From NCBI GenBank assembly GCA_029953675.1, contig JAMWBK010000012.1, positions 434,001-498,000 of the forward strand: a DNA stretch of 64,000 nucleotides, written 5' to 3'. This document shows, one piece after another, positions 2,268 to 58,747 of the stretch; positions within the stretch are counted from its first letter, which is position 1, and every line of letters starts with the position of its first letter. Position numbers and translations under genes: made by a program. The notes under the pieces are model-generated. The model was given only the letters and a program-made list of their open reading frames with translations. It searched no databases and was not told the origin of the DNA. Origin of the DNA: Rhodosorus marinus CCMP1338. Lineage: Eukaryota > Plantae > Rhodophyta.

Positions 2268-2511
2268 GGACTGGACTTTACTAGCATAGCCTGAAGCGCT
2301 ACGCAAGGCGTGAAGATGAACTAATAACTAGGGAGGGAAGTATGCCTCGGAAAGCATGTCGCTGGAATATCGCCAAAGGGAGACACTTAAACGCCTCAAG
2401 AGCGCCAAATATTCAGTAGGATGCTCAGCAAAACATTTCCGCAACCACTCTAAACCCGACTTATCCACGTGACCAAAGCTTTCCACAATGAATGGCTGGA
2501 ACCGGTGAGAG
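2268..2511 (-). mobile_element. 5'-truncated family A copy carrying a 23-nt deletion, with 12-bp TSD
   Basis: TSD cgattcttatat at 2256-2267 and 2512-2523; tail ggactggactttac. Confidence 0.92.
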
Positions 2512-2804
2512 CGATTCTTATATTGACGCAATTCTTATGCTCTGTCCGAGCCCAGCACGTTTGTGCACCACCATATCTTGATGATGCGCATTTTTCATGA
2601 CTGTCATGGTTCGACGAAAATACAACCCAAACAGCAGATATCATACTTCATGCAGGGTGGTGGCAAAGCTACTCCGCAGTCAGAGGTTGAAACTAGGTCT
2701 CACGATTCTGTGCTGGGGCTACGTTAGAAGGACGGTCATAAAAACCTTCAAGTCACTGGAAATATGACTGCCTTTCCATGAAAACGCTTCTCACAGACGC
2801 ACTT

Positions 2805-3611: not shown

Positions 3612-4456
3612 GTTTTTATTAGCATAGCCTAAAGCGCTACGCAAGGCGTGAAAGGGAACTAAGAACTAGGTAGGGAAGCGTGCAAATCCAGGCGCCGATG
3701 GCTCGCCTCGGCAAGCATGCTTCTAGAAGATCGCCACAGAGAGACACTTGAACGGCGTAAGAGTTCCAAGTATTCCGTAGGATGCTCAGCGAAACCTTTC
3801 CGCAACCACTCCAAACTCGACTTCTCCACGTGACCAAAGATTTCCACGATTAAAGGCTGGAACCGGTGGGAGCGACCCTCTGCGCAAGGCAGACTGGCCA
3901 CACTCTCAGCATACCGTCGTTCTTTCACTCGGCGAAAGGCCGAAGCGGCTGCTCCTCGGCGACGGGCGGCAGAGCTGAGATGAGCGCTAGCCACAGGGTA
4001 TGTGATCGCGAGTCCACATATGCTGAGCGCCTGGCGGCAGTGTCGGAGACGAGGAGATACGCGATGCAGCGAGGCGCTGCAGTGTCCGAGACCGATCTGG
4101 GCAGTTCCAATTCCACCTCAACCGTATGCCCTACCTGAGTCAAAGATTCGCTGAGAATGTACTTGAGGTGAGTGTTACGCCTAGTACGAAGACCTCTCAA
4201 CAGTCCGCATGAACCTAAGAAGTGGTAGCCACACGCGTCAATCCAACTCTCACATCCGTGGCAGAAAGACGGCCGATTAGAGTGCCAGGGAACTTGTGGC
4301 ACCCTGGTAGATCTTTGCAGCAGTGCGGAACTGGAAGGCGTCGAAGCGGTGTCCCAGTTACGACGGCAAAGCGGTTAACCACACCCGCGATAGATGGCCT
4401 CCCAGGCCGCGGGAGCGAGCGGCGGTAGGCGGTGTGAGGGGATAGTTGAGCAAGAC
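3612..4456 (-). mobile_element. Family A' (related subfamily) 5'-truncated copy
   Basis: ORFs 3925-4302 and 3659-3994 encode the CCHC (CHGC...H...C) and RLE regions; tail ggtttttattagc. Confidence 0.9.
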
Positions 4457-4524
4457 TGCCACCACTGGACTTTACTGGACTTTACTAGCATAGCCTGAAG
4501 CGCTACGCAAGGCGTGAAGATGAA

Positions 4525-7500
4525 CTAATAACTAGGGAGGGAAGCATGCAACCCCAGGCGCCGATGGCGCGCCTCGGAAAGCATGTCGCTGGAATATCGC
4601 CAAAGGGAGACACTTAAACGCCTCAAGAGCGCCAAATATTCAGTAGGATGCTCAGCAAAACATTTCCGCAACCACTCTAAACCCGACTTATCGACGTGAC
4701 CAAAGCTTTCCACAATGAATGGCTGGAACCGGTGAGAGCGACCCTCAGCGCAAGGCAGACTGGCCATGCTCTCAGCATACCGTCGTTCCTTAACTCTTCG
4801 AAGGGCTGAAGCCGCGGCCCCCCGGCGGCGGGCGGCTGCGGTGAGGTGGGCGCTGGCCACGGGGCAGGTAATCGCAAGGTCCACATATGTTGAGCGTCTG
4901 GCAGCAGCGTCGGAGACGAGGAGATCGGCTATACAACGGGGCGGTGCAGAGTCCGAGATGGATCTGGGCAGTTCCGACTCAACCTCAACCGTATGCCCTA
5001 TCCGAGTCAAAAATTCGCTGAGGATGTACTTGAGGCGAGTGTGACGCCTCGTACGGAGACCTCGCAACAGTCCGCAGGAACCCAGGAAGTGGTAGCCACA
5101 AGCGTCAATCCGGCTCTCACATCCCTGACAGAAAGACGGCCGATTAGAGTGCCACGGAGCCTGTGGCAAACCGAGATAGATGCGTGCGGCAGAACGGAAC
5201 TGGAAAGCATCGAGACGATGACTCAATGACGACGGTAGAGTGGTTAACCACAAGTGCGAGAGGTGGCCTCCCATGCCGCGGAGACGAGCGGCAGTGGTAG
5301 GCGGCGTGAGAGGAGAATTGAGCATGACTGTGTGAGCGGCACTGTGTTGGCCCCAGGTGAGGCTATGTTGAATCACATCAGTGCGGGAGCTCCACAATCG
5401 GCTCAAACCCGGGTAGTCTGCAACAGGGGACCCGGGGCTAGCCTCTCCGTCATCGGCAAGAACTCGGTCGAGGGGACAATCCTCAATCGCTTCAGCTCGT
5501 CCCCATAACAGCTCCCTCCAGGAACGAAAGCGGGACCTATTTGCGTCCGGCACGGCGTTGCACCTCCTGAACGCGTGTTGAAGACCATCATAAATTGTCA
5601 AAGCCGGGGGCGGCAGGGTCACTGGATCCTCGTTGGTCAAAGCTCGAGCCAAGAGGCAGGCACTTCGCATCCGGAAGGTCACCAACGTTCGCAGCGCGGT
5701 AGCCCAGGAGGCAACCGCCGCTGGCGAGCATACCAGCCCACGGTCTGCGACGCCGAATCCCCTAATCGCAACGGTAGAGCGATCTGTGCACGAATAAAGT
5801 CCCTGTCGGGAGCAGCTTCAAGATCGAGGGGCTCATCCAAGAGCGTTCCCCAGTGTTGCAGGGTCATTTCGTCGGCTTTAGCCGCGATCCACGAGCCCCA
5901 AGCTGGAGGCAGGCTGCGCAACCAGTAGTTGAGTCTGGGACCGGCACAAAAGCGGGAAAGCAAGCAGGCCGATTGCAGCATGCTGTCGGGTAGGTGCTCA
6001 ATGGCGTCGGTGAGTTGCTTGTGCCGTGCCAAAACTCGCTCGCAGGATGCTTGGACAAAGTTGTCAGTCCCCAATCCGACGCCGTGGTGTTCGAACCCTT
6101 CACGTTCGCTGATTAGTCGCAGAGTGGGTGGCAGAGAGTTCAGCGACACGTCCCTCGGGGGGAGAAAGCGACATTTTTCTGTTTCCACAGTCAAACCGAC
6201 GCGACGTGCAATCGCTTCGATCGCGGTCAGTCCCCTAGCCAGGGTGTCAGGGGTGCCCAGCAATGTTACGTCATCGTGGTACGCGCAGATTCGAAGATCC
6301 GAGACCTCAGTCGAAAGACGTAAAAGTACGAGCTGTAGGGCACAGGCATGAAGAAGAGGTCCGCAAGGGTCGCCTTGTTGGACGCCAGTATGTGCTTGAA
6401 AAACAGTGCCCTCCGTTGTCAAGTAGGGGAGGCTCTCCCCTCCGTAAATACCCGATAGAAACGGCCACGCCTCCGGAAACACACGTCGGAGCACCTCTAG
6501 CGCATGCGTCCGCGACACGCTGTTGAATGCATTCCGGAAATCAACCACCAAGACTCCCCACTCCGGCCTACTGGCGCGTTCTAGCTCGATCCCATGGGTG
6601 ATCAGTTCGCAACCCCAGAAAATCCCACCCCTACTTGCAAGGGCGCCATAAAAGCTGTGACGCGCTGGCGAAGGCGCTGGCATAGCCACCTCCCGGCTAA
6701 CTTCCGTAGGCTCTCCACCATCCCGATCGGCCGGAGACGCGGGTGGGCCGGCTGGTGGTCAGGTTTCGTGAGCAAGCAAAGCTGTGCCTGCCGGAGATGT
6801 TCCCATGGCGCGGACGCACCCGATACGCCCTGGAACAACTTGTTAAGGATCCTCAGAAGCGCGCTCTGGCCAGGCTGGCTCAGGGCCTGCAATAGCTCTG
6901 TTCTTAGTCCGGAGGGTCCAGGACAGCGTCCCCGACGCGAGGTACGAAGCAAATCCTCCAGGTCAGACTCACTGAGCGTCAGATCGATGCGAAACCTGGC
7001 CAACTCCGGACGGTCCAAGAATACCTCGAATTCAGGGGACAAATCCACGTCGGACTCAGGGAACAAAGACGACACCGTCTGGGCGAGACTATCATCGTAG
7101 GGGAGGACAGGCGCCTGGCCCTCCAAAACCCGCGCCGCTCGACTTAAATCGCCCACTGCTACCAATTTCTGTACTCGAGCTGGCACGGGCGACACTGTGC
7201 CATGCCGAGTCCGACGGGCGGATGGTGCTGACGACGCCAAATAGCTGCGCTGTAGTACTTCGAAGTCTCCCTTCAAGAACAGGGCCAGTCGGTCTCGTAC
7301 TCGCCATCTGCGCTCCGATGTGTGAATGGGGGCCAGAATCATGCGCGGCATGACCCCCAGAAAAACCCAAATGACTGTGTCCCGAATGTTGCGAGCCAGG
7401 CTCGTGAAGATGAAATCGAGAATGGTTCCAGCTACCAGAAGGTCTCCACGAGGAAGGACGACTGGGGGAATGCCCCCACGGAGGGGAAGCGAGCCTCCTT

Positions 7501-7594
7501 CCAAAGAAATCCACCGCCGGAGCCAACTCCGAAAACGCGTACGCCAAATGCCCCAGTCTCCGCCCTCCTTCAGGACATAAGACTGTAGATCCAT
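4525..7594 (-). CDS. Family A ORF2: reverse transcriptase + CCHC + restriction-like endonuclease; two single-base frameshifts (1023 aa if repaired)
   Basis: LRPIG, QVGVGFSG[G]CE, DFRNAFNSVSR, GVQQGDP, YHDD, CQGC-x-H-x-C, RTRRH, ADLLV...YVDL, FIVESFG. Frameshifts lie at C4 runs 6613-6616 and 5759-5762. Confidence 0.9.
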
Positions 7595-7625
7595 AGGCTG
7601 CGACCTCGCAGCCGTGCCTGGAGCG

Positions 7626-9035
7626 CTAATCGTGCTTCTCCCCCTTAGACCCGGGGGAGTCGGTCCTCGCTCTCTTACCTCCTATCCGCACCAAAGTCGT
7701 GAGCCTCCCACTCCGCGAGGCTCGCGGAACGGATCCCGCGGGCTTCAGCAAAGTAACCTGGGCGTCCTCCACCGCCATGCCCTCAGTCTGCTCCCCTGCC
7801 TCACCACTCTCGCTGGAAGTAGTGCTGGAAGCAGAGCCCTCCAAAATCCCCACCCGCTGCAGCTCTGTCTTGTAGCGCGAAGTCAGCACAAGTCGCCTCT
7901 CCAGATCGAAGAAACTGGAAACCGCCATGCGCAGGTGACGAGGGCCCGACCGGAACCGCGCCAACAAGATCCTCTCAAGGCGCTGAATCCGTAGCCAATG
8001 GATCGCTGCCGCCTTCACGCTGCTCTCATGCTCAGAGAGCCCTGCCGTTTCTCCCGGAGACAGGAAATTGCCCGAGAAACGGTCAAAATCGAAGTGCAAA
8101 ACCACCTGCGGGTTGCAGCGCAGCCACCGGGCGCTCTCAGGCCACTGCTCGGTAGGCTTCGCCAGCAAGGCCTCCAGGTACTTGGCGGCGGTTGCGGAGA
8201 CTAAAAACAGCACATCGCGGCCCTCATAGTTTGCGAAGAAGAAATCACCCCTGCTGCACCCTAACGATTCCGCAAAAGTGTCCCGGAAGTCTCGCATAGA
8301 CGGAACCTGTCCTCGTGTAGTCTGGGGCCGGACATTTCGCACCCACAGAAATTGGAGAGTGGTCTCCACAGGTCCATCCTGAGGCTCGCGAGATGGTATG
8401 AAACGGAGCATAGCCGCCGTACGTGTGGCAGTGGTGCCCTTCCGCAAGACTGATGCGTACGAAGCGCCCCCCTTGCGGCCACCACGTGCCCCCGAAGTAG
8501 CCGGGAGCTGGTGACGACCTGAGGGCTGGTCCAAGAGAGGGAAGTCCACAGCTGCAGTCTCCTCCACACCGGTTGCCGCACAGTCACCACCACCATTGCC
8601 TCGAGTCCCCGAGCGCTGAAGCGCGTTTTGGCCCGGCCTGCCGCTCCCCAACGTCGTACTGTCCCGCGCAGAAGCAACAGCCCTCGCCTGTCCCGGGACA
8701 GGTTCATGTTGATTGACCGGATGTTGACTGCCTTCAGCCAACGCTGCCACTCTGGGGCAATTCAAATTCTCGTCCGAATTTGAATTTGACCTGGCCAGCA
8801 ATCCCGATTCCAGCCCACCTAGCTTCTGGGTGAGCTGAGGGAGCACTCCACGATCACTCGCAGCCGTGATCAGGCTGGTGACAGCGGAGATAAGTGAACG
8901 CGCCTGGGTGCCAGAAGCGCCTTCCAAGTCAACCTCGGAAGAAAACGTGCCGCAGCTGAGGCGAACACGGAGTCCCCCACCTGGCAGTGCCTCCTTGGGA
9001 GGAGGCTCCGTCGAGTGCGGAGATATCCCTACCAT
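7626..9035 (-). CDS. Family A ORF1 (469 aa from first ATG), unknown gag-like/RNA-binding protein
   Basis: Long open frame ending 31 nt before the ORF2 ATG; second copy at 17860-18650; SYASVLRKG motif; no zinc knuckle visible. Confidence 0.75.
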   Translation of the reverse strand: MVGISPHSTEPPPKEALPGGGLRVRLSCGTFSSEVDLEGASGTQARSLISAVTSLITAASDRGVLPQLTQKLGGLESGLLARSNSNSDENLNCPRVAALAEGSQHPVNQHEPVPGQARAVASARDSTTLGSGRPGQNALQRSGTRGNGGGDCAATGVEETAAVDFPLLDQPSGRHQLPATSGARGGRKGGASYASVLRKGTTATRTAAMLRFIPSREPQDGPVETTLQFLWVRNVRPQTTRGQVPSMRDFRDTFAESLGCSRGDFFFANYEGRDVLFLVSATAAKYLEALLAKPTEQWPESARWLRCNPQVVLHFDFDRFSGNFLSPGETAGLSEHESSVKAAAIHWLRIQRLERILLARFRSGPRHLRMAVSSFFDLERRLVLTSRYKTELQRVGILEGSASSTTSSESGEAGEQTEGMAVEDAQVTLLKPAGSVPRASRSGRLTTLVRIGGKRARTDSPGSKGEKHD

Positions 9036-9216
9036 CCTGAGGGAATCCGCCAAGGAAACGTTGCACCACCAATATGAAACCGCACCGAGAGAATAATCGA
9101 CCAAACCCAACCCAAATAGGAAAGGCCCCGCAACTCCACCACTAGGTCGGCAACAAGGCGTTCTTCCCTCTGTTAGTCCGCCACAGGCAGGGACTTCTCA
9201 AATTAATGATACATCT

Positions 9217-16044: not shown

Positions 16045-16164
16045 GATATTCCAGCGACATGCTTTCCGAGGCGCGCCATCGGCGCCTGGGGTTGTATACT
16101 TCCCTCCCTAGTTATTAGTTCATCTTCACGCCTTGCGTAGCGCTTCAGGCTATGCTAGTAAAGT
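16045..16164 (+). mobile_element. Family A 120-nt 3' fragment fused to the 5' side of U2
   Basis: gatattccagcgac...gctatgctagtaaagt, matching the A 3' end. Confidence 0.93.
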
Positions 16165-16353
16165 CTTCTCGGCCTTTTGGCTAAGATCAAGTGTAGTATC
16201 TGTTCTATCAAGTGTAACAACTTGATGCATCTAAATTTTAGATGCTTTTGTTACAAATATTTTTCTGGAGGGGTTTATGTTTGGTTAGTGGCTTGCCACG
16301 CCCGTTTACCGCGCTTTGCTCAGATTTTGCACTGCTTTCTGTTGCGGAGCACC
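16165..16353 (+). ncRNA. U2: U2 spliceosomal snRNA sequence, missing about 4 nt at the 5' end; probably a retrocopy
   Basis: CTTCTCGGCCTTTTGGCTAAGATCAAGTGTAGTATCTGTTCT; branch-point recognition GTAGTA (16193-16198); stem IIa (16207-16226), IIb (16227-16245), IIc complement (16213-16220/16248-16255); Sm-like ATTTTTCTGG; stem III with CTTG loop; stem IV with TTGCAC loop. Confidence 0.97.
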
Positions 16354-16355
16354 TC

Positions 16356-16468
16356 TTCAGCGACATGCTTTCCGAGGCGCGCCATCGGCGCCTGGGGTTG
16401 CATACTTCCCTCCCTAGTTATTAGTTCATCTTCACGCCTTGCGTAGCGCTTCAGGCTATGCTAGTAAA
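16356..16468 (+). mobile_element. Family A ~112-nt 3' fragment fused to the 3' side of U2
   Basis: cagcgacatgc...gctatgctagtaaa. Confidence 0.93.
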
Positions 16469-17598: not shown

Positions 17599-18668
17599 GG
17601 GGTTTTTGCTGGGGTTTTGTTGTGAACATTGGGGTTTTGTTTCTTTTTCGGTCGTGAGCGTGTTCGTTTACGGGAAGCGCTTTCTCTGGTACGCCTTCCC
17701 CTCGATTTTCCGCGGTGCGTCGTTTGCATTTGCAACTACTTCTGTCTTCGGGGTGGGTGTGTTGCGGGGCCTTTCCTATTTGGGTTGGGTGTGGTCGATT
17801 ATTCTCTCGGTGCGGTTTCATATTGGTGGTGCAACGTTTCCTTTGCGCATTCCCTCAGGATGGTAGGGATATCTCCGCGCTCGACGGAGCCTCATCCCAA
17901 GGAGGCACTGCCAGGTGGGGGACTCCGTGTTCGCCTCAGCTGCGGCACCTTTTCCTCCGAGGTTGACTTGGAAGGCGCTTCTGGCACCCAGGCGCGTGCA
18001 CTTATCTCCGCTGTCACCAGCCTGATCACGGCTGTGAGTGATCGTGGAGTGCTCCCTCAGCTCACCCAGAAGCTAAGTGGGCTGAAATCGGGATTGCTGG
18101 CCAGGTCAAATTCAAATTCGGACGAGAATTTGAATTGCACCAGAGTGGCAGCGTTGGCTGAAGGCAGTCAACATCAGGTCAATCAACATGAACCTGTCCC
18201 GGGACAGGCGAGGGCGGTTGCTTCTGCGAGGGACAGTACGACGTTGGGGAGCGGCAGGCAGGGCCAAAACGCGCTTCAGCGATCGGGGACTCGAGGCAAT
18301 GGTGGTGATGACTGTGCGGCAACCGGTGTGGAGGAGACTGCAGCTGTGGACTTCCCTCTCTTGGGCCAGTCCTCAGGTGGTCACCAGCTCCCGGTTACTG
18401 CGGGGGCACGTGGAGGCCGCAAGGGGGGCCCTTCGTACGCCTCAGTCTTGCGGAAGGGCACCACTGCCACACGTACGGCGGCTATGCTCCGTTTCCTACC
18501 ATCTCGCGAGCCTCAGGATGGACCTGTGGAGACAACTCTCCAATTTCTGTGGGTGAGAAATGTCCGGCCCCAGACTACACGAGGCCAGGTTCCATCTATG
18601 AGAGACTTCGGGGGGACACTTTTGCGGAACGCTAGGGTGGAGCCGGGGTGATTTCTTCTTCGCAAACT
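17599..18668 (+). mobile_element. Family A 5' part (5' leader + N-terminal half of ORF1), 3'-truncated
   Basis: Homologous to the reverse complement of 8230-9135 and extends about 160 nt further 5'. Confidence 0.88.
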
Positions 18669-20856: not shown

Positions 20857-23316
20857 ATGAGATTCTTCAGGAGAGCGAGAGGCGAGGAGGAAATTGAGGA
20901 AGATAAGGTTGTGCATGCCGCGACTGCAGACCTGAATAGGGCTGGGGATACGGGCAGCAAGGTGTCTAACATGGAGAGTGGTAAGGAAAACTGCGCAGAT
21001 GAGAAGAACGGGGATGCTCGAGGGTCAAATTTGGACGCCGTGGTGGATATGGAAGACTTGAAAACGAATCACATCAAGGTGGAGTATGACGAGCTGCCAC
21101 AGAAGAACATTGGCCTTGAGGTCCGTGGTGCTAAGGATATCCAGAGGCTCGCTGAGGAAACGAACTTTGACGCACCAACTGACTCTGTTGTTATGCTTGA
21201 CGTTGAAGCCTCGAACCCGTCGACAGTTCTCGATGTTGCCATGAAAGGCCTCGTGGAGTACGCAGCGTTTCCTGCCAGCCTTGCCGGCGAGGCTAGGGCT
21301 AACCTCTTGATCCAGGACGTGGACAGGTCAGTTGACCAACTTCAAGGTGACAAATACGTGTCTGGAAAGGCTTCCACCGAATTCATGTGGCGTAGATACA
21401 TCCAAGGGAACGGTTTTATCGTCACCTACGGGCGTGTGTACGGACTCGACAGGAGACTTTCGGTGATACTGCGCTTAGTGAAACAGGAAAACTGTTCCAA
21501 GTTCGATCCATCCGCTCCTGCGTTCGTAGCAATAGCGATAGCTCCGACGATCGAGCAGAAGGCTACCAAAACTGAATATGAAGTAGCTCGGAACTTTGCC
21601 GCAATGCTCCAGGACGAGGAGTTCTACAAGGAAGCATATTCTGCTCCGAATGAAGAGCACGTGAGATCTGCGGCGGCCAACTATGTGGAAAAGAGGGTGG
21701 TTTACGAGGATGACATGTACGCAAACGGATTGAAAGGAGGAGATGTCGGATTTGAGGATATGAGGCGAACTGGAAAACTCTTTGGGGGTTTAATTGCGGA
21801 TATCAAGAGGAAATATAAGTGGTCTGTGTATAAATCGGATTGGACCGATGGAATGACGGAGTGGAGAAGTATTTTGAAGTATATCTCGACAACCGCATGG
21901 CTGTATTTTGCTGTTATAATGCCCGTCATCGCCTTTGGATCCCTCAACAATGTGAACACGCGGCAGCAAATTGGGGTTTCCGAAACTGTTCTCTCGCAGG
22001 CAATATGTGGTGGCCTCAGTGCTCTGTTTTCAGGCCAGCCCTTGGCAATATCAATGACCACGGGACCTGTGACTGTGTTTATCGGTATCCTCTTCTCGTG
22101 GTCGGAGGGACTGAGAATTCCTTTCCTTCCGTTGTACGCGTGGACGGGGATCTGGACAGCGATAATACTGACTCTGATTGTCATGTTCGACCTCATAGCT
22201 TACGTACGATTTGTGGGGCAGTTCACGGAAGAGATCTTCTCAATGCTCGTGGCGCTTATCTTCATTTCGAACTATATCCAACCGTTGGTGAACACTGCAT
22301 ACGAAGAGACTACGGACATATTTTTGCTATCTTTCCTCCTGGCCGCCGGGATGTACGTCATGTCTAGGTGGTTCAGTTTGTTTGAGCGAAGATACATATT
22401 GAATGGAATCACGAGGACGTTGCTGGCGGACTTTGGAATGCCTTTTTCCGTCCTTGTTTGGTCGGGAATAAGGCAAATCTTCACCAACGTAAATGTGGAA
22501 ATGCTTCAGGTTCCAGAGAGTGGTGGAATCGTCACAACCAACGGTCGTTCTTGGATTGTGCCTCTAGGCGATTTACCCGTTGGATGCGTATTTCTCGCCT
22601 TTGTTCCGGGCCTCCTCCTTGCTATGTTGTACTGTGTTGACCAAAATGTCGCTGTACTACTCACCAACAAGAAGGAGAACAAGCTTAATAAGGGCGTCGG
22701 ATACTTTCTGGACATGCAGGTGGTCGCTGTTTCCGTATTCGTTTGTTCACTTCTGGGTATACCATGGGCAAACGCGGCCATCCCACATTCACATCTTCAT
22801 GCAAGGATACTCTCGGAGAAAGAGGAGTACGAATCTCATGGCAGAGTCGAGTATAGGGTTGTCCAAGCCAGGGAGGTTCGGATCACCAATTTTTTGACGC
22901 ACGTTCTGATTTTTGCCTCCATGTTCCTTCTATTTATCGTGGGATATATTCCAACATCTGTGGTCTGGGGTTTCTTCCTGTACATTGGTGTGGCAACTTT
23001 GGATGGAAACCAAATGTTCGAGAGGCTACTTCTGGTATTCACCCAGCCTACAAAATATCCACCAAACCACTACGTGAGACGCGTTCCGATGATGCGCATA
23101 GTTCTGTACACTCTGATTCAGTATGCTCTGCTAGTCCTGCTTTGGTTCGTGAATGTGAACTTCTATTTGCCTCCGGGTGGCGTCTTTAACGCGGGGCTCT
23201 TATTTCCATTTGTTATCATATTGTTTGTGCCAATTCGAATGTTCTTGCTCCCAAAGATTTTCCTGCGCAAGGAACTCCACGCCCTGGAAATGGAAAAGGA
23301 AGACTTTAGCGACTAG
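20857..23316 (+). CDS. SLC4: SLC4/band-3-family anion (bicarbonate/borate) transporter; start uncertain (ATG 20857 or ~20971)
   Basis: GKLFGGLIADIKRKY...SDWTDG, AFGSLN, ALFSGQPLAI, TGPV, FTEEIFS, DQN, KGVGYFLD, HLHA, VREVRITN, FLYIGV, NQMFER; many TM segments; intronless. Confidence 0.93.
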   Translation: MRFFRRARGEEEIEEDKVVHAATADLNRAGDTGSKVSNMESGKENCADEKNGDARGSNLDAVVDMEDLKTNHIKVEYDELPQKNIGLEVRGAKDIQRLAEETNFDAPTDSVVMLDVEASNPSTVLDVAMKGLVEYAAFPASLAGEARANLLIQDVDRSVDQLQGDKYVSGKASTEFMWRRYIQGNGFIVTYGRVYGLDRRLSVILRLVKQENCSKFDPSAPAFVAIAIAPTIEQKATKTEYEVARNFAAMLQDEEFYKEAYSAPNEEHVRSAAANYVEKRVVYEDDMYANGLKGGDVGFEDMRRTGKLFGGLIADIKRKYKWSVYKSDWTDGMTEWRSILKYISTTAWLYFAVIMPVIAFGSLNNVNTRQQIGVSETVLSQAICGGLSALFSGQPLAISMTTGPVTVFIGILFSWSEGLRIPFLPLYAWTGIWTAIILTLIVMFDLIAYVRFVGQFTEEIFSMLVALIFISNYIQPLVNTAYEETTDIFLLSFLLAAGMYVMSRWFSLFERRYILNGITRTLLADFGMPFSVLVWSGIRQIFTNVNVEMLQVPESGGIVTTNGRSWIVPLGDLPVGCVFLAFVPGLLLAMLYCVDQNVAVLLTNKKENKLNKGVGYFLDMQVVAVSVFVCSLLGIPWANAAIPHSHLHARILSEKEEYESHGRVEYRVVQAREVRITNFLTHVLIFASMFLLFIVGYIPTSVVWGFFLYIGVATLDGNQMFERLLLVFTQPTKYPPNHYVRRVPMMRIVLYTLIQYALLVLLWFVNVNFYLPPGGVFNAGLLFPFVIILFVPIRMFLLPKIFLRKELHALEMEKEDFSD

Positions 23317-27234: not shown

Positions 27235-30200
27235 ATGACTGGGCGTCGTCCAAGTTCCAGTTCCCGCACGCGTAAGAGAGTCCGCCACCCGCAGCTGTTC
27301 TACATGGACGTGGACCGCTGGGTTACTCGGCTTGACCTGTTCCTGCAAACCCACACCGAGAATGGCACCCTTTGGTGGGCTTTGACTCACTCCCCTACGA
27401 ATACGCGAGAACACGTCCCTTCGGGACAAGTCCCAGCATGGAGCGCGCTTTTCAAATATGCCCTGGAAGTGGCCCTGGATGGCAGCGCCCCGGACCTCCG
27501 CCGCCTTTTTGTCCAGGTACTGCCTAGTCTGATCCTGGGATATGCTCGTGATCTTACCATGCCTGCCCAAGTCGAGATGCTGCTTGAGGGCGACTTCGAA
27601 CCCTTGTGGCGTGCAATTTCTGCTACTCGTCAGCGCACAACTGCCGCTTCTTCTGCAACTCGTACTCCGCGCTCGCCGTTTTCCTCCCGTCGTGTCCTCC
27701 ATAAGGCGAAAAATCGCCGCCTCTCTCAAGCAGCACAGCACATCCTTTCGACCCCGCTTGCCCCGAGAACTCAACAAACCTGGGAGGTCCTCGAAGCGAT
27801 GTTCCCGGACCTTCCCGACGCGGTCCTACATCCCCAACTGGAGGAGTGTTTGTCGGCCAGTCTCCATGCTTCTGCACCTCGGCCGAGTCCCTTATGGGAA
27901 GCTCGGCTGGCTTCGGATGAATCGATACTTGTACTTTTACAACGACTCCCCGCTGGTATAAGCCCTGGCCCGAGTGGCCTTCGGGTAGAGCACCTGCAGG
28001 CTCTCGAACACCATGTCCGCCCAGCCCTAGTCCGGTTCCTTCGAATGATTAGCACGGACCCCGAGACTCTGCCAGAGATCCTACTCCACAGCCTCCGGAG
28101 TAGTCGTATCGTGCCTCTGGCTAAGAACCCCACCTCGGAGCCGGGGACTTCTTCACCCCGCCTACGCCCCATTGGCATTCCCGAGGTGCTGCGCAAGGTT
28201 GCTTCACAATGGGTCTTACAACACGTCGTGCCCCGCGCTCGTGATTTCCTGCTGCCTACTCAACTCGGTGTTGGCGTCTCCGGGGGCTGTGAAGCAGTCC
28301 TCCACACGCTCCAGGCTCATCTACACTATGAACCTGACCACATTCTACTGAAACTCGAACTGGAGAACGCGTTTAACCGCATCGATCGCCGTCTGGCGAA
28401 ACGCATTATCGAAGCGCGCTTTCCGGAGTTGCTCCCCCTCTATGTGCTCGGGTATGGTCCTGATTCCGCGGATGGTTCGTACCACTTCGGCTGGCTTCCT
28501 GACGACAGCTCCCCTTCTTCCGCTCGAGACGGCTTCTTCCTCCGATCGCGTACTGGCGTTCAACAAGGGGATCCTCTCGCACCGGCGCTGCATGCCCTGG
28601 CCCTTTCGCCTTTTCTTATGGCGATGCGCACTCTCTTTCCCCGCATCACGGTGCTCGCGCTCCATGACGACATTAGCTTGGCGGGCCCCTACTACGATAT
28701 TCACGAGGCATTTCAGTGGAGTCAACGAGTTTTAAGCTCGCTCGGCGCGAGACTGCAACCGGATAAATGCGTCCTCTTTGGCCATCGGATTGACTCGCCA
28801 AGGCTTGTCAACCACGACTTCCCCGAAGTTCACGTTACGCGGCACGGCGTCATGCTGCACTCTGTTCCAGTAGGCACCCGGGCCTTTGTCATCGGAGCCT
28901 GCCGAAAGCTGCAAAACACACACGCCAAGCTTGTCAAAGGGATTCAGAAACTCCCCGAAGGCGAGTTGCAGACGAAGTTGGCGCTCTTCCGCTACTGTGC
29001 TGGTCCGCGGTTAGGCTATCATCTCCGCTGCCGGGCTCTTCCTTTTGGCGCGCTTCTTGCTACTGAGGCGGACACCATCACAATGCACGAGTTGGATACG
29101 TTGTGCGGAAGTCTGCTTCTTCTCCAAGGGCTTCCACGGGAGGAGTTGGAGACCGTGAAAGCCCAAATTCGCTTACCTGGCAAGTGGGGTGGCCTTGGCC
29201 TGGCTACGCGCGTTCGTATTCACCCGATTGCTTTTTATTCCGCTTGGACTCGCACGCGTCAGACTAACGCCGCTGACAATACCTTTCTGAGACGTCTGGG
29301 TACGGCGTGCCGCGGGACCGATCCCAATGCCGAACCTATTCTCGAGGATCTCTCCAGCTCAACGGATCTTCTGGACCAGCAGCTCTCGCTCGCTAGCCGC
29401 TGGACCACTTCTCGCCTCAGCTCCCGCACTTCTGCTCGTATTCGCGCCCTCGCTCTTTGGTCCAAGGCGCTTCCAACAGATGATGCCGCTCCAGCTTCCA
29501 TCAATCCTCCGCTCGCAGGTCCTCTACCACAAATATTCTCTCAGGAGAGTCACCGTAGAGCGTTTGAGGATATCGTGGATGATTCCGCGCTCGACGATTG
29601 CACTCGTGCTCGTGTCCGCTCTGCTTCTGGTGCTGGCGCTGGTGGCTGGCTTCGGGACCTCCCTAGCACAGGGTCTGAACCCCTTTCCACCGAAGAAATC
29701 CGATGCAGTTTACGCTTGCTTTTGGGGCTCCCGGTACCTGGTCTCCGCACTACCCCTGAATGCACAGTCTGTGGCAAAGCACACGCTGCGGATGGGACCC
29801 AACGTCTTTTTCACTGTTCCACTTCGGCTGGGAATAGGACTCTGCGCCATAATCGGATTCGTGATGAGCTCGTGAGTCACCTTCGGCGGTGGCACCTTCC
29901 GGATGTTCAGGTTGAGCCTTATGGGTTTTTTGAGGGTAGTCGTCTCCGCCCTGACATAGTCGTCCGTCATCACCGCACGGGTAAGCAGTACGTTATCGAT
30001 GTCAAGGTGGAATCCCCATGGCCCATCTCCTCGCTCGCGCCGCATGTCAATCGGGTTATGCCGCCGCCAATGCTGAAGCCGGGAAACGAGCCAAGTATCG
30101 GGATGCCATCGGTGACCACAATGATTTCCACTTTGTACCCTTCGCCATCGAAGGTTTTGGACGACTTGGCCAAGCGGCCCAAGACTTCATTACAGAAATT

Positions 30201-30380
30201 ACTGATCATCTTGAGCACAAAGCGGACGCGCAAACGCTCGTGCGGGTGGACCTTAATCGCGAGCTATGGCGTGGTACGGCTCGCCTGGCGATCCATGCCA
30301 TGCGCAAAGATAATCATTTTCGGACGATGTTCCCTATAGAAACTAGTCTTCTACCCCGCTCTGGGGTCTCCTTAGCCTAG
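27235..30380 (+). CDS. Family C ORF2: RT + Zn-knuckle-like + RLE; one single-base frameshift (1048 aa if repaired)
   Basis: LRPIG, QLGVGVSGGCE, ENAFNRIDR, GVQQGDP, LHDD, CTVC, RTLRH, RPDI...IDV, FVPFAIEGFG. Frameshift at C4 run 30014-30017. Confidence 0.9.
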
Positions 30381-30450
30381 CCCCTCCTGTTTTTCTCTCG
30401 TCCCTCTAGCGCTACATTCGGTAGTTGAAGTAAATGAAAGAGTAAAGTCC

Positions 30451-31037
30451 GAGGCGTCACACTCGCCTCAAGTACATCCTCAGCGAATTTTTGACTCGGA
30501 TAGGGCATACGGTTGAGGTTGAGTCGGAACTGCCCAGATCAATCTCGGACTCTGCACCGCCCCGTTGTATAGGCGATCTCCTCGTCTCCGACGCTGCTGC
30601 CAGACACTCAACATATGTGGACCTTGCGATTACCTGCCCCGTGGCCAGCGCCTACCTCACCGCAGCCGCCCGCCGCCGGGGGGGCCGCGGCTTCAGCCCT
30701 TCGAAGAGTTAAGGAACGACGGTATGCTGAGAGCATGGCCAGTCTGCCTTGCGCTGAGGGTCGCTCTCACCGGTTCCAGCCATTCATTGTGGAAAGCTTT
30801 GGTCACGTCGATTAGTCGGGTTTAGAGTGTTGCGGAAATGTTTTGCCGAGCATCCTACTGAATATTTGGCGCTCTTGAGGCGTTTAAGTGTCTCCCTTTG
30901 GCGATATTCCAGCGACATGCTTTCCGAGGCGCGCCATCGGCGCCTGGGGTTGCATGCTTCCCTCCCTAGTTATTAGTTCATCTTCACTCCTTGCGTAGCG
31001 CTTCAGGCTATGCTAGTAAAGTCCAGTAAAGTCCAGT
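30451..31037 (+). mobile_element. Young family A 3' fragment attached directly to the family C 3' end
   Basis: Near-identical to 4467-5050; agtaaagtcc on both sides. Confidence 0.92.
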
Positions 31038-40194: not shown

Positions 40195-40458
40195 AGGAGA
40201 CCCTAAAAAGAAAAACAACCCGAGAGCAAAAAAAAAGACTAAGCGCGGCGAAGATCGCGTGTCTCCAACATCAAAGCAGCGTTCACACGCACCAGCAAGA
40301 AGCATAAACGGGTGAACAACGACGACAGACCGTCAGGGCGTTCGCGGAACAATTGCCGAAGCCAAAGAGAACCAACGGAATCCATAAACCCAAAGCACTC
40401 AATGACCAGATATATCATGGGTCATTGAATGCTTTGGGTTTATGGATTCCGTTGGTTC
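40195..40458 (-). mobile_element. Family B' 3' fragment ending in a 39-bp fold-back at its 5' truncation point
   Basis: Arms 40369-40407 and 40420-40458 (1 mismatch), 12-nt spacer. Confidence 0.85.
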
Positions 40459-40509
40459 ACGAATGTCGGGGAAATACAAAGCCCATACATTTTTCAACTC
40501 TTTGCGAGT

Positions 40510-52146: not shown

Positions 52147-53238
52147 ATGGCGAAAACGATACTGTTCGGATGCGTTTTGGTGGGGGCGCTCTATGTGAGC
52201 GTCGCCTTGGGTGCCAATGTGGTCGCTATCACTGGTGACACTCAGGACACGATTCAGGTCAATGATGTGGATACGTTGAGTACGGTCCAGACCATTGTTC
52301 AATTTTTAGCCGTGAAGCTGTCGCATCTCATTTCGTTGGAGAACTATATATACGCGGTGGGGGTGAACTCGGCGGGCGAAGGTGTAGTTCTCCAATTCGA
52401 AATTCTGAACGGAAACAACAAGCTTGAGTTTGTGACCTCGACATCGTATGGTACTGAGTGCACACAACCGTCCGCGCTGACTGCGACCTACGACTACAGC
52501 GACGAGCCGGCCCTGGCAATGTCGTGCATAGGTTCGGGAACGACCTTAGTGATGGATCCTGAGACGCTGCAGTTGATCCAGCTCTATATTCTACCCGAGA
52601 TATCGGACATCAGTGCCTCGAAGGTCGGGGATGTTGCGATGACCGCCAATTACCTCTACGCCACCTACACAACCCTCCCGCAGAGTGATGACGACAAGAG
52701 CGAGGGATTACTTGTCCAGTACAGCACGGACAGTTGGGAGATCGTCAACTGGTCAATCATTCGTGGACCGTCGTCTCACCTCAAGATCGGCGGAAGTAGT
52801 GATCTGTTCCTGACTTCAACGGGCAACGGTGCATCTTACTTGAGCCAGTTGAACCCGAACACCCTCGAGGAAGTTAATCGTAGAAATCCCCAAGGCTTTG
52901 AATTTCTCCAGATGAACTTGACGCCCAACCTGAAGAGTCTCTTCCTGTACATCCAGAAGTCAGGCCTCAACGCTGGAAGGGTAAGAAATTTCGACCAGAC
53001 AAAGTACCCGGCCGAGAAGTCCTGCGACGACGTCCGAATCGAACTCTCTCCGGCTACAAGTCAGCCTTTGGTCTTTGGCGAATACCTTTTCATCAGGTCC
53101 AGCTCCTCGATGACAAGGTTCACCTTCGGTCATGGATGTCCTCGTCAGAAATCTCAGACATCCTATGGCCTAACAGAACCGGATAACTACAGCACCTCGA
53201 TCGCTATAGCCTGCCGGTCGTGCGTCTCGATCTCTTAA
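52147..53238 (+). CDS. Secreted beta-strand-rich hypothetical protein (363 aa), possible beta-propeller
   Basis: Signal peptide MAKTILFGCVLVGALYVSVALG; intact ORF. The fold is inference. Confidence 0.8.
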   Translation: MAKTILFGCVLVGALYVSVALGANVVAITGDTQDTIQVNDVDTLSTVQTIVQFLAVKLSHLISLENYIYAVGVNSAGEGVVLQFEILNGNNKLEFVTSTSYGTECTQPSALTATYDYSDEPALAMSCIGSGTTLVMDPETLQLIQLYILPEISDISASKVGDVAMTANYLYATYTTLPQSDDDKSEGLLVQYSTDSWEIVNWSIIRGPSSHLKIGGSSDLFLTSTGNGASYLSQLNPNTLEEVNRRNPQGFEFLQMNLTPNLKSLFLYIQKSGLNAGRVRNFDQTKYPAEKSCDDVRIELSPATSQPLVFGEYLFIRSSSSMTRFTFGHGCPRQKSQTSYGLTEPDNYSTSIAIACRSCVSIS

Positions 53239-56702: not shown

Positions 56703-56978
56703 GATGAATGAACGAACGGGTTTAATCGGAGGCTGAAAAAGATAAAAACCCCGCGGAGAAAAAAGACTAAGCGCGAGGGAAAATCGCGCGCCTCCAACAT
56801 CAAAACAGCGTTCATACGCCACAGCAAGAAACTCAAACGGATATACAACGAAGGCAGACGGTCAGGGCGTTCGCGGAACAATCCCCGAAGCCAACGAATA
56901 CCCAACGGAATCCATAAACCCAAAGCACTCAATGACCAGAGGTACTAGGCGATGGCCTAGAGCCGAAGTGTGATCAAA
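56703..56978 (-). mobile_element. Family B' 3' fragment
   Basis: RERPDRLPSL...LLWRMNAVLMLEAR; tail aaacccgttcgttcattc. Confidence 0.85.
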
Positions 56979-56992
56979 GCACCTCATACTGG

Positions 56993-58747
56993 ATGGATTT
57001 ACTGGCTTTATTGGACTTGACTTTACTAGCATAGCCTGAAGCGCTACGCAAGGCGTGAAGATGAACTAATAACTAGGGAGGGAAGCATGCAACCCCAGGC
57101 GCCGATGGCGCGCCTCGGAAAGCATGTCGCTGGAATATCGCCAAAGGGCGTTATTAGCATAGCCTACAGCGCTACGCAAACCGCGAAAAGGAACTAAGAA
57201 CTAGGTAGGGAAACGTGCAAACCCAGGCGCCGATGGCGCGCCTCGGCCAGCATGCTGCTCGAATATCGCCACAGAGAGACACTTAAGCGCCGCAAAATTT
57301 CCAAGTATTCAACAGGATGCTCAGTGAAACATTTCCGCAACCACTCCAAACCCGACTTCTCCACGTGACCAAAGCTTTCCACAATGAAAGGCTGGAACCG
57401 GTGGGAGCGACCCTCAGCGCGAGGCAGGCTGGCCATACTCTCAGCATACCGTCGTTCCTTCACGCGGCGAAGGGCCGAAGCAGCTGCTCCCCGGCGGCGG
57501 GCGGCAGCCGTGAGATGGGCGCTTGCCACAAAAATCCATCTCATCTGCCGGAATCGAAGCAGCGACCCTAGGATAGCTGCCGCAACTACAGTCATTCATT
57601 CAACTACAGTCCCATGCTCTGCCAACTGAGCTAAGATGAGTGGTGTATGGATTTACTGGACTTTACTAGCATAGCCTGAAGCGCTACGCAAGGCGTGAAG
57701 ATGAACTAATAACTAGGGAGGGAAGCATGCAACCCCAGGCGCCGATGGCGCGCCTCGGAAAGCATGTCGCTGGAATATCGCCAAAGGGAGACACTTAAAC
57801 GCCTCAAGAGCGCCAAATATTCAGTAGGATGCTCAGCAAAACATTTCCGCAACCACTCTAAACCCGACTTATCGACGTGACCAAAGCTTTCCACAATGAA
57901 TGGCTGGAACCGGTGAGAGCGACCCTCAGCGCAAGGCAGACTGGCCATGCTCTCAGCATACCGTCGTTCCTTAACTCTTCGAAGGGCTGAAGCCGCGGCC
58001 CCCCGGCGGCGGGCGGCTGCGGTGAGGTGGGCGCTGGCCACGGGGCAGGTAATCGCAAGGTCCACATATGTTGAGCGTCTGGCAGCAGCGTCGGAGACGA
58101 GGAGATCGGCTATACAACGGGGCGGTGCAGAGTCCGAGATGGATCTGGGCAGTTCCGACTCAACCTCAACCGTATGCCCTATCCGAGTCAAAAATTCGCT
58201 GAGGATGTACTTGAGGCGAGTGTGACGCCTCGTACGGAGACCTCGCAACAGTCCGCAGGAACCCAGGAAGTGGTAGCCACAAGCGTCAATCCGGCTCTCA
58301 CATCCCTGACAGAAAGACGGCCGATTAGAGTGCCACGGAGCCTGTGGCAAACCGAGATAGATGCGTGCGGCAGAACGGAACTGGAAAGCATCGAGACGAT
58401 GACTCAATGACGACGGTAGAGTGGTTAACCACAAGTGCGAGAGGTGGCCTCCCATGCCGCGGAGACGAGCGGCAGTGGTAGGCGGCGTGAGAGGAGAATT
58501 GAGCATGACTGTGGATTTACTAGCACAGTCTGAAGCGCTTCGCAGGGTGTGAAAGGAAACCAGAAACTAGGGAGAAAAGCGTGCAAACTCAGGCGGCGAT
58601 GGCGCGCCTCGGCGAGCATGCTCCCATAGCGCGACAATTAACCGGGTAGGGTCCCAGATATTCAACCGAATGGGCAGTAAAACATTTCCGCATCCACTCC
58701 AAGCTGGACTTTTCCATTTGCCCAAGGTTTTCCACCATGAAACGTAG
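56993..58747 (-). mobile_element. Five-unit array: A (56993-57148), A' (57151-57529), pre-tRNA (57530-57648), A (57649-58513), older-type A (58514-58747)
   Basis: All units co-oriented and abutting; candidate TSD gcacctcat(a/g)ct(g/a)g at 56979-56992 and 58748-58761. Confidence 0.85.
57539..57640 (-). tRNA. tRNA-Tyr: tRNA-Tyr(GTA) with 11-nt canonical 37/38 intron; disrupted (7-nt insertion plus 11-bp TSD, and G53C)
   Basis: Acceptor stem CTCATCT/AGATGAG + A73; D arm GCTC-AGTTGGCA-GAGC; anticodon arm TGGGA-CTGTAG[intron]A-TCCTA; T loop TTCGATT; no encoded CCA; TTTTT 4 nt downstream. Confidence 0.93.

Follow-up and report, generated by a model that had tools for sequence, protein, structure and literature searches.

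The tRNA-Tyr sequence described here, found in the genome of the red alga Rhodosorus marinus, has kept a leader, an intron and an oligo(T) trailer, and is wedged between fragments of non-LTR retrotransposons. It is probably a retrocopy of a nuclear pre-tRNA-Tyr that was neither end-processed nor spliced. This copy would stand at the 5′ end of a composite that an R2-like non-LTR retrotransposon inserted. The original prediction, that an unprocessed nuclear pre-tRNA had been captured by template jumping, is supported by a repeat bracketing the composite, an exact junction, the orientation of the pieces, a parallel case with U2 snRNA, the finding that a tRNA follows 1 of 34 element 3′ ends, and a defect in the tRNA itself.

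The whole stretch of DNA that was analysed, hereafter the window, is 64,000 nt long (contig JAMWBK010000012.1, assembly GCA_029953675.1, record positions 434001-498000). This is nuclear DNA of a eukaryote, with one U2 snRNA match; no rRNA was detected in it with Rfam. An all-against-all comparison showed that 53% of the window is repeated sequence, near-identical copies included. The comparison set amounted to 171 kb of the R. marinus genome, made up of the window and five further loci (107 kb). Many copies of the element families A and B are present in the five further loci; these 107 kb gave no match to tRNA-Tyr, U2 or other Rfam families, and no second tRNA capture. A “tRNA-Gly” called there by ARAGORN (locus L007, 12095-12259) was rejected as a likely false positive: it has a 76-nt non-canonical intron, lies within A sequence and has no Rfam support. 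Related elements are also present in the JGI transcript contigs L003 and L004, the tails of which were uninformative. Two features of the window lie apart from the elements. At 40351-40472 is a near-perfect inverted repeat of ~44 bp with a 12-nt loop, for which Rfam gave only sub-threshold matches to microRNA families. The other is a bicarbonate-transporter gene (20857-23316, plus strand), of which a second contig of the assembly (locus L009) carries a paralogue, about 86% identical in protein sequence; this paralogue clusters at 90% identity or more with an MMETSP R. marinus transcript, itself 86% identical to the window copy.

Element A is a non-LTR retrotransposon of roughly 4.7-4.8 kb, whose full-length copies include the following:

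Window 4466-9142, minus strand: full-length A copy.
Locus L007 12928-17606: full-length A copy.

The reverse transcriptase of A matched Pfam RVT_1 (E 2.6e-16), and its best matches among solved structures were R2 proteins (E about 1e-10). A profile of the C-terminus, built from five copies, aligned to R2 residues about 933-1083, in the zinc-knuckle/endonuclease part of R2 proteins, with weak statistics (E 6e-4 to 5e-3), and the conserved motifs Cx2C...H...C, RTRRHTR (RRH) and YVDL (D..VD) are found in this region. On these features A is an R2-like element, in which the reverse transcriptase is followed by a predicted C-terminal CCHC knuckle and a predicted restriction-like endonuclease (PD-(D/E)xK-type). 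Families A′, B, C and D have the same architecture. No called genes are on record for the A reading frames, and a scan of metagenome contigs produced no relatives of the endonuclease region. A was not assigned to R2 proper, its copies being located in element tails and other sites, not in 28S rDNA, with no rRNA in the window. Nor was it assigned to Utopia, as the A tail meets U2 at about nt 5, not nt 39.

At its 3′ end A has a conserved GCGTAGCGCTTCAGGCTATGCTA, after which ~10-nt units (for instance GTAAAGTCCA) come in varying number. Folding of the 145-nt A 3′ end gave nothing beyond shuffled controls (z = −0.28), so that a structured binding element in this region is unsupported. Copies of A are mostly 5′-truncated and often joined head to tail. 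Very short 3′-terminal fragments of A, 105-134 nt long, recur (16045-16165, 16358-16468 and 57015-57148 in the window, 7126-7230 in locus L008); they stand behind truncated tails or behind U2, and their 5′ ends are clustered within about 30 nt, perhaps because jumps favour this point or because a fragment of the RNA is protected there.

Several further observations were made on these families. An A copy (5′ end at 58513) and a diverged A′ copy (about 4455, minus strand) are both cut at A position 3811, 5 nt upstream of an in-frame ATG (CAGTCATGCTCAA...). About 115 nt are common to window 17640-17752 (plus strand) and L007 12812-12927, in each case 5′ of a full-length A copy, and are absent from the copy that starts at 9142; this is probably the true 5′ UTR of A, which therefore would be about 4.8 kb long. 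Element C (1034-aa reverse transcriptase ORF, 27235-30339, plus strand) has a GTAAA-rich tail of its own (30340-30460), and this tail runs directly into a 589-nt A 3′ fragment (30447-31035), forming a cross-family junction between a tail and a truncated copy. Finally, a 112-nt B-family 3′ fragment lies within an A copy at L008 6501-6639, with a perfect 11-bp duplication, GATCAATCTCG; the B tail there is T-rich, unlike the A tail.

The tRNA-Tyr unit is composed of the following parts, in the order of the element strand except for the first line, which gives the tRNA as a whole:

57539-57640, minus strand: tRNA of the pre-tRNA-Tyr unit (Rfam RF00005; ARAGORN in intron mode).
57641-57646, minus strand: putative 5′ leader ACACCA, 6 nt, with a purine start.
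57604-57640, minus strand: tRNA-Tyr exon 1, 37 nt, through the anticodon GTA and one further base (Rfam, ARAGORN).
57575-57603, minus strand: intron, 29 nt, at the canonical 37/38 position (ARAGORN i(38,29)).
57539-57574, minus strand: tRNA-Tyr exon 2, 36 nt, with the discriminator A at its end and no CCA (Rfam alignment, ARAGORN).
57530-57538, minus strand: 3′ trailer TGGATTTTT, with a T5 run like that of a Pol III terminator at its end (sequence; alignment of A and A′ copies).

The RF00005 match at 57539-57640 (minus strand) scored 44.6 bits, against a gathering score of 29. ARAGORN called a tRNA-Tyr (gta) over the same interval when introns were enabled, with the intron at the canonical 37/38 position; its default bacterial mode reported no tRNA in the window, and the intron mode was needed. 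The identity first proposed from the letters, a minus-strand tRNA-Tyr(GTA) of 73 nt with no CCA, was thus borne out: the exons total 73 nt (37 + 36) and CCA is not encoded. The intron had to be corrected. It had been given as 11 nt (TTGCGGCAGCT) and is actually 29 nt long, 18 nt having been overlooked; the 119-nt span proposed for the unit adds up only with 29 nt. It holds ACUGUAGU, for which the predicted fold allows pairing with the anticodon region. What looks like GACUGUAGUUG repeated in direct orientation is, in the same fold, base-paired to the anticodon region, as CUGUAG is self-complementary via G.U pairs. This predicted pairing resembles the normal anticodon-intron helix of eukaryotic precursors. 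That the 18 additional bases arose as a copying slip was considered and rejected, since the repeated segment pairs with the anticodon.

Of the features of a functional tRNA, the cloverleaf with anticodon GTA and the 37/38 intron are present and an intact B box is absent. The B box consensus is GGTTCGAnTCC, in which the G53:C61 pair is invariant. Here the B box reads GCTTCGATTCC, and this pair is broken: position 53:61 of the T stem is a C.C mismatch, flagged as a non-canonical pair in the Rfam alignment, with the G53 to C change falling inside the B box. Because of this change the copy is probably a pseudogene. Its donor was sought by an exact 37-mer scan of metagenome contigs, and no match was obtained.

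Both ends of the unit coincide with repeats. In the all-against-all comparison of the 171 kb, it appeared as a single-copy island (57531-57639) with edges exactly at the neighbouring repeats, and the tRNA and every element fragment that flanks it run in one direction (minus strand). On the trailer side, homology to A′ begins at GTGGCAAGC, the base right after the T run, with no spacer, as judged by alignment with five other copies. The trailer had been read as abutting the truncated 5′ end of A′, which is what we found, homology starting right after TGGATTTTT. On the leader side, the A tail expected upstream of the tRNA is there, as the 3′ tail of an A copy. The leader had been read as 8 nt starting with A; the A start holds, and the length is probably 6 nt, the first two bases (AT) being part of AGTAAATCCAT. 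This 11-mer recurs downstream, and the leader is therefore most likely ACACCA, 57641-57646. In the predicted fold, its CCA is able to pair with UGG of the trailer. We take its first base as the likely true start of Pol III transcription.

The unit is the first part of a longer array, listed here in the direction of the elements:

58512-58741, minus strand: D-like 3′ fragment, with its native tail CTAGTAAATCCA and the third and last GTAAATCCA of the window.
57658-58513, minus strand: A copy (A positions 3811-4668 and tail) on the upstream side of the tRNA unit, 99.9% identical to the reference A.
57647-57657, minus strand: putative target-site duplication AGTAAATCCAT, upstream copy; the tail of the preceding A copy ends with it (exact 11-mer).
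57151-57529, minus strand: 5′-truncated A′ fragment, 379 nt, A positions 4283-4661, 86.5% identity.
57149-57150, minus strand: CG filler, 2 nt, between the A′ and A fragments.
57004-57148, minus strand: short 3′-terminal A fragment, 134 nt, A positions 4536-4669, 99.3% identity, with tail GTAAAGTCAAGTCCAATAAAGCC.
56993-57003, minus strand: putative target-site duplication AGTAAATCCAT, downstream copy; next come CCAGTATGAGG and a B-family fragment (56722-56968).

Exactly two copies of the 11-nt direct repeat AGTAAATCCAT are present in the window, where 0.04 would be expected by chance. Its upstream copy is directly 5′ of ACACCA and its downstream copy directly 3′ of the tail of the short A fragment, so that the pair brackets one composite made of ACACCA, the tRNA-Tyr with its intron, TGGATTTTT, 379 nt of A′ (the tail of which is cut down to GCTAATAA), CG, and 134 nt of A with its tail. 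The pair has the look of a target-site duplication left by one insertion. Its length of 11 nt matches the 9-11-bp duplications of these families: among sister insertions, an isolated A fragment in the window (2270-2514) is flanked by a 9-bp target-site duplication, ATATAAGAA, and the B fragment of locus L008 by the 11-bp one given above. The simplest reading is that the whole composite, from the tRNA leader on, entered the tail motif in one retrotransposition event. The A copy at 57658-58513 either provided the targeted tail or inserted later into the same motif. As a caveat, the putative duplication sits in tail-like, low-complexity sequence, and A-family tails have GTAAAT variants. Moreover, the A′ fragment (86.5% identical to A) and the adjoining A fragment (99.3%) could differ in age; the array would then have grown stepwise, and it would be less certain which pieces AGTAAATCCAT brackets. 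The three occurrences in the window of the shorter GTAAATCCA all fall within this array; the D-like family has this sequence as its native tail, and it recurs in locus L008.

A similar arrangement was found in the same window with another small RNA:

16166-16357, plus strand: U2 snRNA retrocopy that begins near U2 nt 5 and reaches the 3′ end of the RNA (Rfam, all-against-all comparison).

The Rfam match extends over 16161-16357, with 147.6 bits. On the 5′ side of U2 stands an A tail (16045-16165) and on its 3′ side a 111-nt A 3′ fragment (16358-16468); the three pieces share the plus strand. The A tail is joined to U2 at about nt 5 (GCTAGTAAAGTC followed by TTCTCGGCC), the first ~5 nt of U2 being missing, and the natural 3′ end of U2 (...GCACCTCTT) is fused to an internal position of A, after which come 111 nt of A 3′ end and a tail. 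It follows from these two junctions that U2 is cargo here, not the target. The tRNA and U2 are the two single-copy islands that were identified as RNA genes, and both are tightly bounded by repeats. No target-site duplication was resolved around the U2 composite. The A fragments on either side of it (121 and 111 nt; window 16045-16468) have in common a variant base that is absent from the other A copies read.

These observations suggest the following series of events. The element endonuclease would nick the tail motif AGTAAATCCAT of an earlier insertion, and reverse transcription would be primed on the 3′ end of an A RNA, about 134 nt being copied. The enzyme would then jump to the 3′ end of an A′ RNA, leaving the 2-nt CG filler, copy 379 nt, and jump again, this time onto a nascent pre-tRNA-Tyr made by Pol III, at its oligo(U) 3′ end; this RNA would be copied to its 5′ end (ACACCA). 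Cleavage of the second strand 11 bp away would produce the flanking duplication of AGTAAATCCAT. Before the insertion, the empty site is expected to have read ...AGTAAATCCATCCAGTATGAGG... / ...CTAGTAAATCCATCCAGTATGAGG... We infer this order of jumps, and the entry of all three pieces in a single event, from the arrangement of the fragments. The short A fragment (57004-57148) is proposed as the first template, and reverse transcription probably starts on the A 3′ end and then switches to the 3′ end of another RNA, because short A 3′ pieces recur behind truncated tails or U2. Leader, intron and trailer are removed from a tRNA precursor by RNase P, the splicing enzymes and RNase Z, respectively. 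As leader, intron and oligo(U) trailer are all kept in the copy, the RNA was most likely unprocessed and the encounter nuclear.

Could the tRNA-Tyr gene instead be an ancestral resident, beside which retrotransposons integrated at random, or were directed by Pol III in the manner of Ty3 or Dictyostelium TRE? Ty3 integrates at about the start sites of Pol III transcription, and the A tail does end 6-8 nt upstream of the mature 5′ end, that is, at about a Pol III start site; the cloverleaf, moreover, is otherwise intact. Against this, two independent junctions would have to hit the transcript boundaries exactly, including the variable truncation of A′, which falls at the last T of the terminator, and the 11-nt repeat around the composite of tRNA, A′ and A would be unexplained. 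U2, which has another type of promoter, is sandwiched in the same way, and B box and T stem of the tRNA are defective. Targeting in particular, which had been put forward as the alternative from the start, found no support: 1 of the 34 A-superfamily 3′ ends in the 171 kb, a sample without other tRNA genes, precedes a tRNA, another precedes U2, and the rest are followed by truncated elements or unique sequence. A resident gene thus appears quite improbable. As to synteny, the closest host gene (52147-53238) is one of a multi-copy family; its paralogues are at most 66% identical to it and are not homoeologues. Its 363-aa product (plus strand) has no Pfam match on record; the family is found in several copies in Rhodosorus, with 52-66% identity between paralogues, and at 4 of 5 member loci A or B arrays lie within a few kb, the L005 locus having B-family matches only.

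The chimera might also have been made at the RNA level, by ligation of the pre-tRNA to an A′ RNA or by Pol III read-through into A′ (5′ transduction). Ligation before retrotransposition is a published model for U6/LINE-1 chimeras (bioRxiv 10.1101/2025.02.02.635956) and would give the same DNA product; jumping between templates and ligation before copying cannot be separated by sequence alone. Nevertheless, the end of a Pol III transcript is unsuited to RtcB-type ligation: the primary transcript ends in a 3′-OH oligo(U), and RtcB-type ligation uses a cyclic phosphate. With read-through, the same exact junction would have to be present at a donor locus, so that the problem is only displaced, and the 2-nt filler between A′ and A, together with the many junctions between tails and truncated copies, fits a jumping polymerase. 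We consider the RNA-level origin unlikely. Extremely improbable, in our view, is a rearrangement of DNA or an assembly artefact that set a tRNA gene among element fragments. Regions such as this one, where 53% of the window is repeated and copies are near-identical, are indeed prone to misassembly and recombination, but the junctions fall at RNA-defined ends (the T5 terminator, the 3′ end of U2), and a duplication of typical length surrounds the composite. As RNA-defined ends are seen twice, random breakpoints are disfavoured.

Capture of the precursor by a jumping reverse transcriptase is therefore the reading that we retain. It involves no new mechanism, since small-RNA/LINE chimeras and pre-tRNA retropseudogenes are established in mammals. 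To our knowledge, such chimeras are undescribed in red algae and in the clade of R2-like elements, and the locus would be an unusually clean natural footprint of serial template jumping in vivo by an R2-like reverse transcriptase, with its target-site duplication intact. Its architecture also matches the prediction of the template-switch model of SINE origin. A bolder proposal is that the composite is a newborn proto-SINE, tRNA-headed and LINE-tailed, which is still transcribable and re-mobilisable. It would have been produced in one jumping event with three templates, by an R2-like element whose copies enter the tails of related elements and which takes up small nuclear RNAs (pre-tRNA, U2) while they are nascent. 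We regard this as very unlikely; if true, the composite would be a natural snapshot of the first step in the origin of a SINE.

Comparison with known systems shows which aspects of the locus are familiar. The template-switch model of SINE origin predicts a tRNA head and a LINE 3′ tail (PMC4476161). Like a tRNA-derived SINE, the composite has a tRNA head and then a LINE 3′ tail; unlike one, it has a T5 terminator between head and body, its B box is mutated, and it was found as a single copy in 171 kb. From Ty3 and TRE it differs in that a fixed tRNA offset does not recur among the A copies of the 171 kb, a sample that contains no other tRNA genes. Utopia elements have a restriction-like endonuclease and target U2 genes, their 3′ end being followed by U2 from nt 39 (PMC4640811). 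The present case resembles them in that a non-LTR element with a restriction-like endonuclease lies beside U2 sequence, sometimes in arrays, and departs from them at both junctions: the A tail is joined to U2 near nt 5, and the 3′ end of U2 continues into A at an internal position.

Small-RNA/LINE-1 chimeras, including U6/LINE-1, are well documented in mammals (PMC4476161), and their origin is put down to a switch of template in the course of target-primed reverse transcription (PMC4476161; bioRxiv 10.1101/2025.02.02.635956). The Rhodosorus composite is built in the same way: a small RNA in sense orientation stands 5′ of a 5′-truncated LINE segment, to which it is joined by its oligo(U) 3′ end, and one target-site duplication (here AGTAAATCCAT, in a tail-like context) surrounds the whole chimera. 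Sense order, junction at a native 3′ end and a single flanking duplication, the marks of a template-switch chimera, are thus all present. The differences are that L1 is of the APE type, whereas the Rhodosorus enzyme is R2-like with a predicted restriction-like endonuclease, that a short tail of ~10-nt repeats takes the place of poly(A), that the host is a red alga, and that apparently three templates were used. Human tRNA/L1 chimeras, recently reported, mostly contain antisense tRNA halves (bioRxiv 10.1101/2025.02.02.635956); the Rhodosorus copy, in contrast, is a full-length, sense, unspliced precursor. Closer in content are the mammalian pre-tRNA and “tailless” tRNA retropseudogenes made by L1 (Schmitz et al. 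2004, cited in PMC4476161). As they are described in the citing paper, these too are retrocopies of tRNA precursors, taken as a sign of nuclear RNA recruitment; they stand alone, whereas the Rhodosorus copy is fused to element fragments and has kept leader, intron and trailer together.

For the enzyme, the nearest comparison is R2, whose reverse transcriptase adds non-templated bases and jumps serially between templates in vitro (PMC8857657; bioRxiv 10.1101/2021.04.30.442027). Those results come from the biochemistry of the Bombyx enzyme, whereas the present case consists of a genomic footprint alone, left by a distant relative (E about 1e-10). The two nevertheless agree, as the CG filler and the homology-free junctions fit the end-to-end jumps that R2 makes in vitro, in which the enzyme leaves one RNA at its 5′ end for the 3′ end of another and adds a few non-templated bases.
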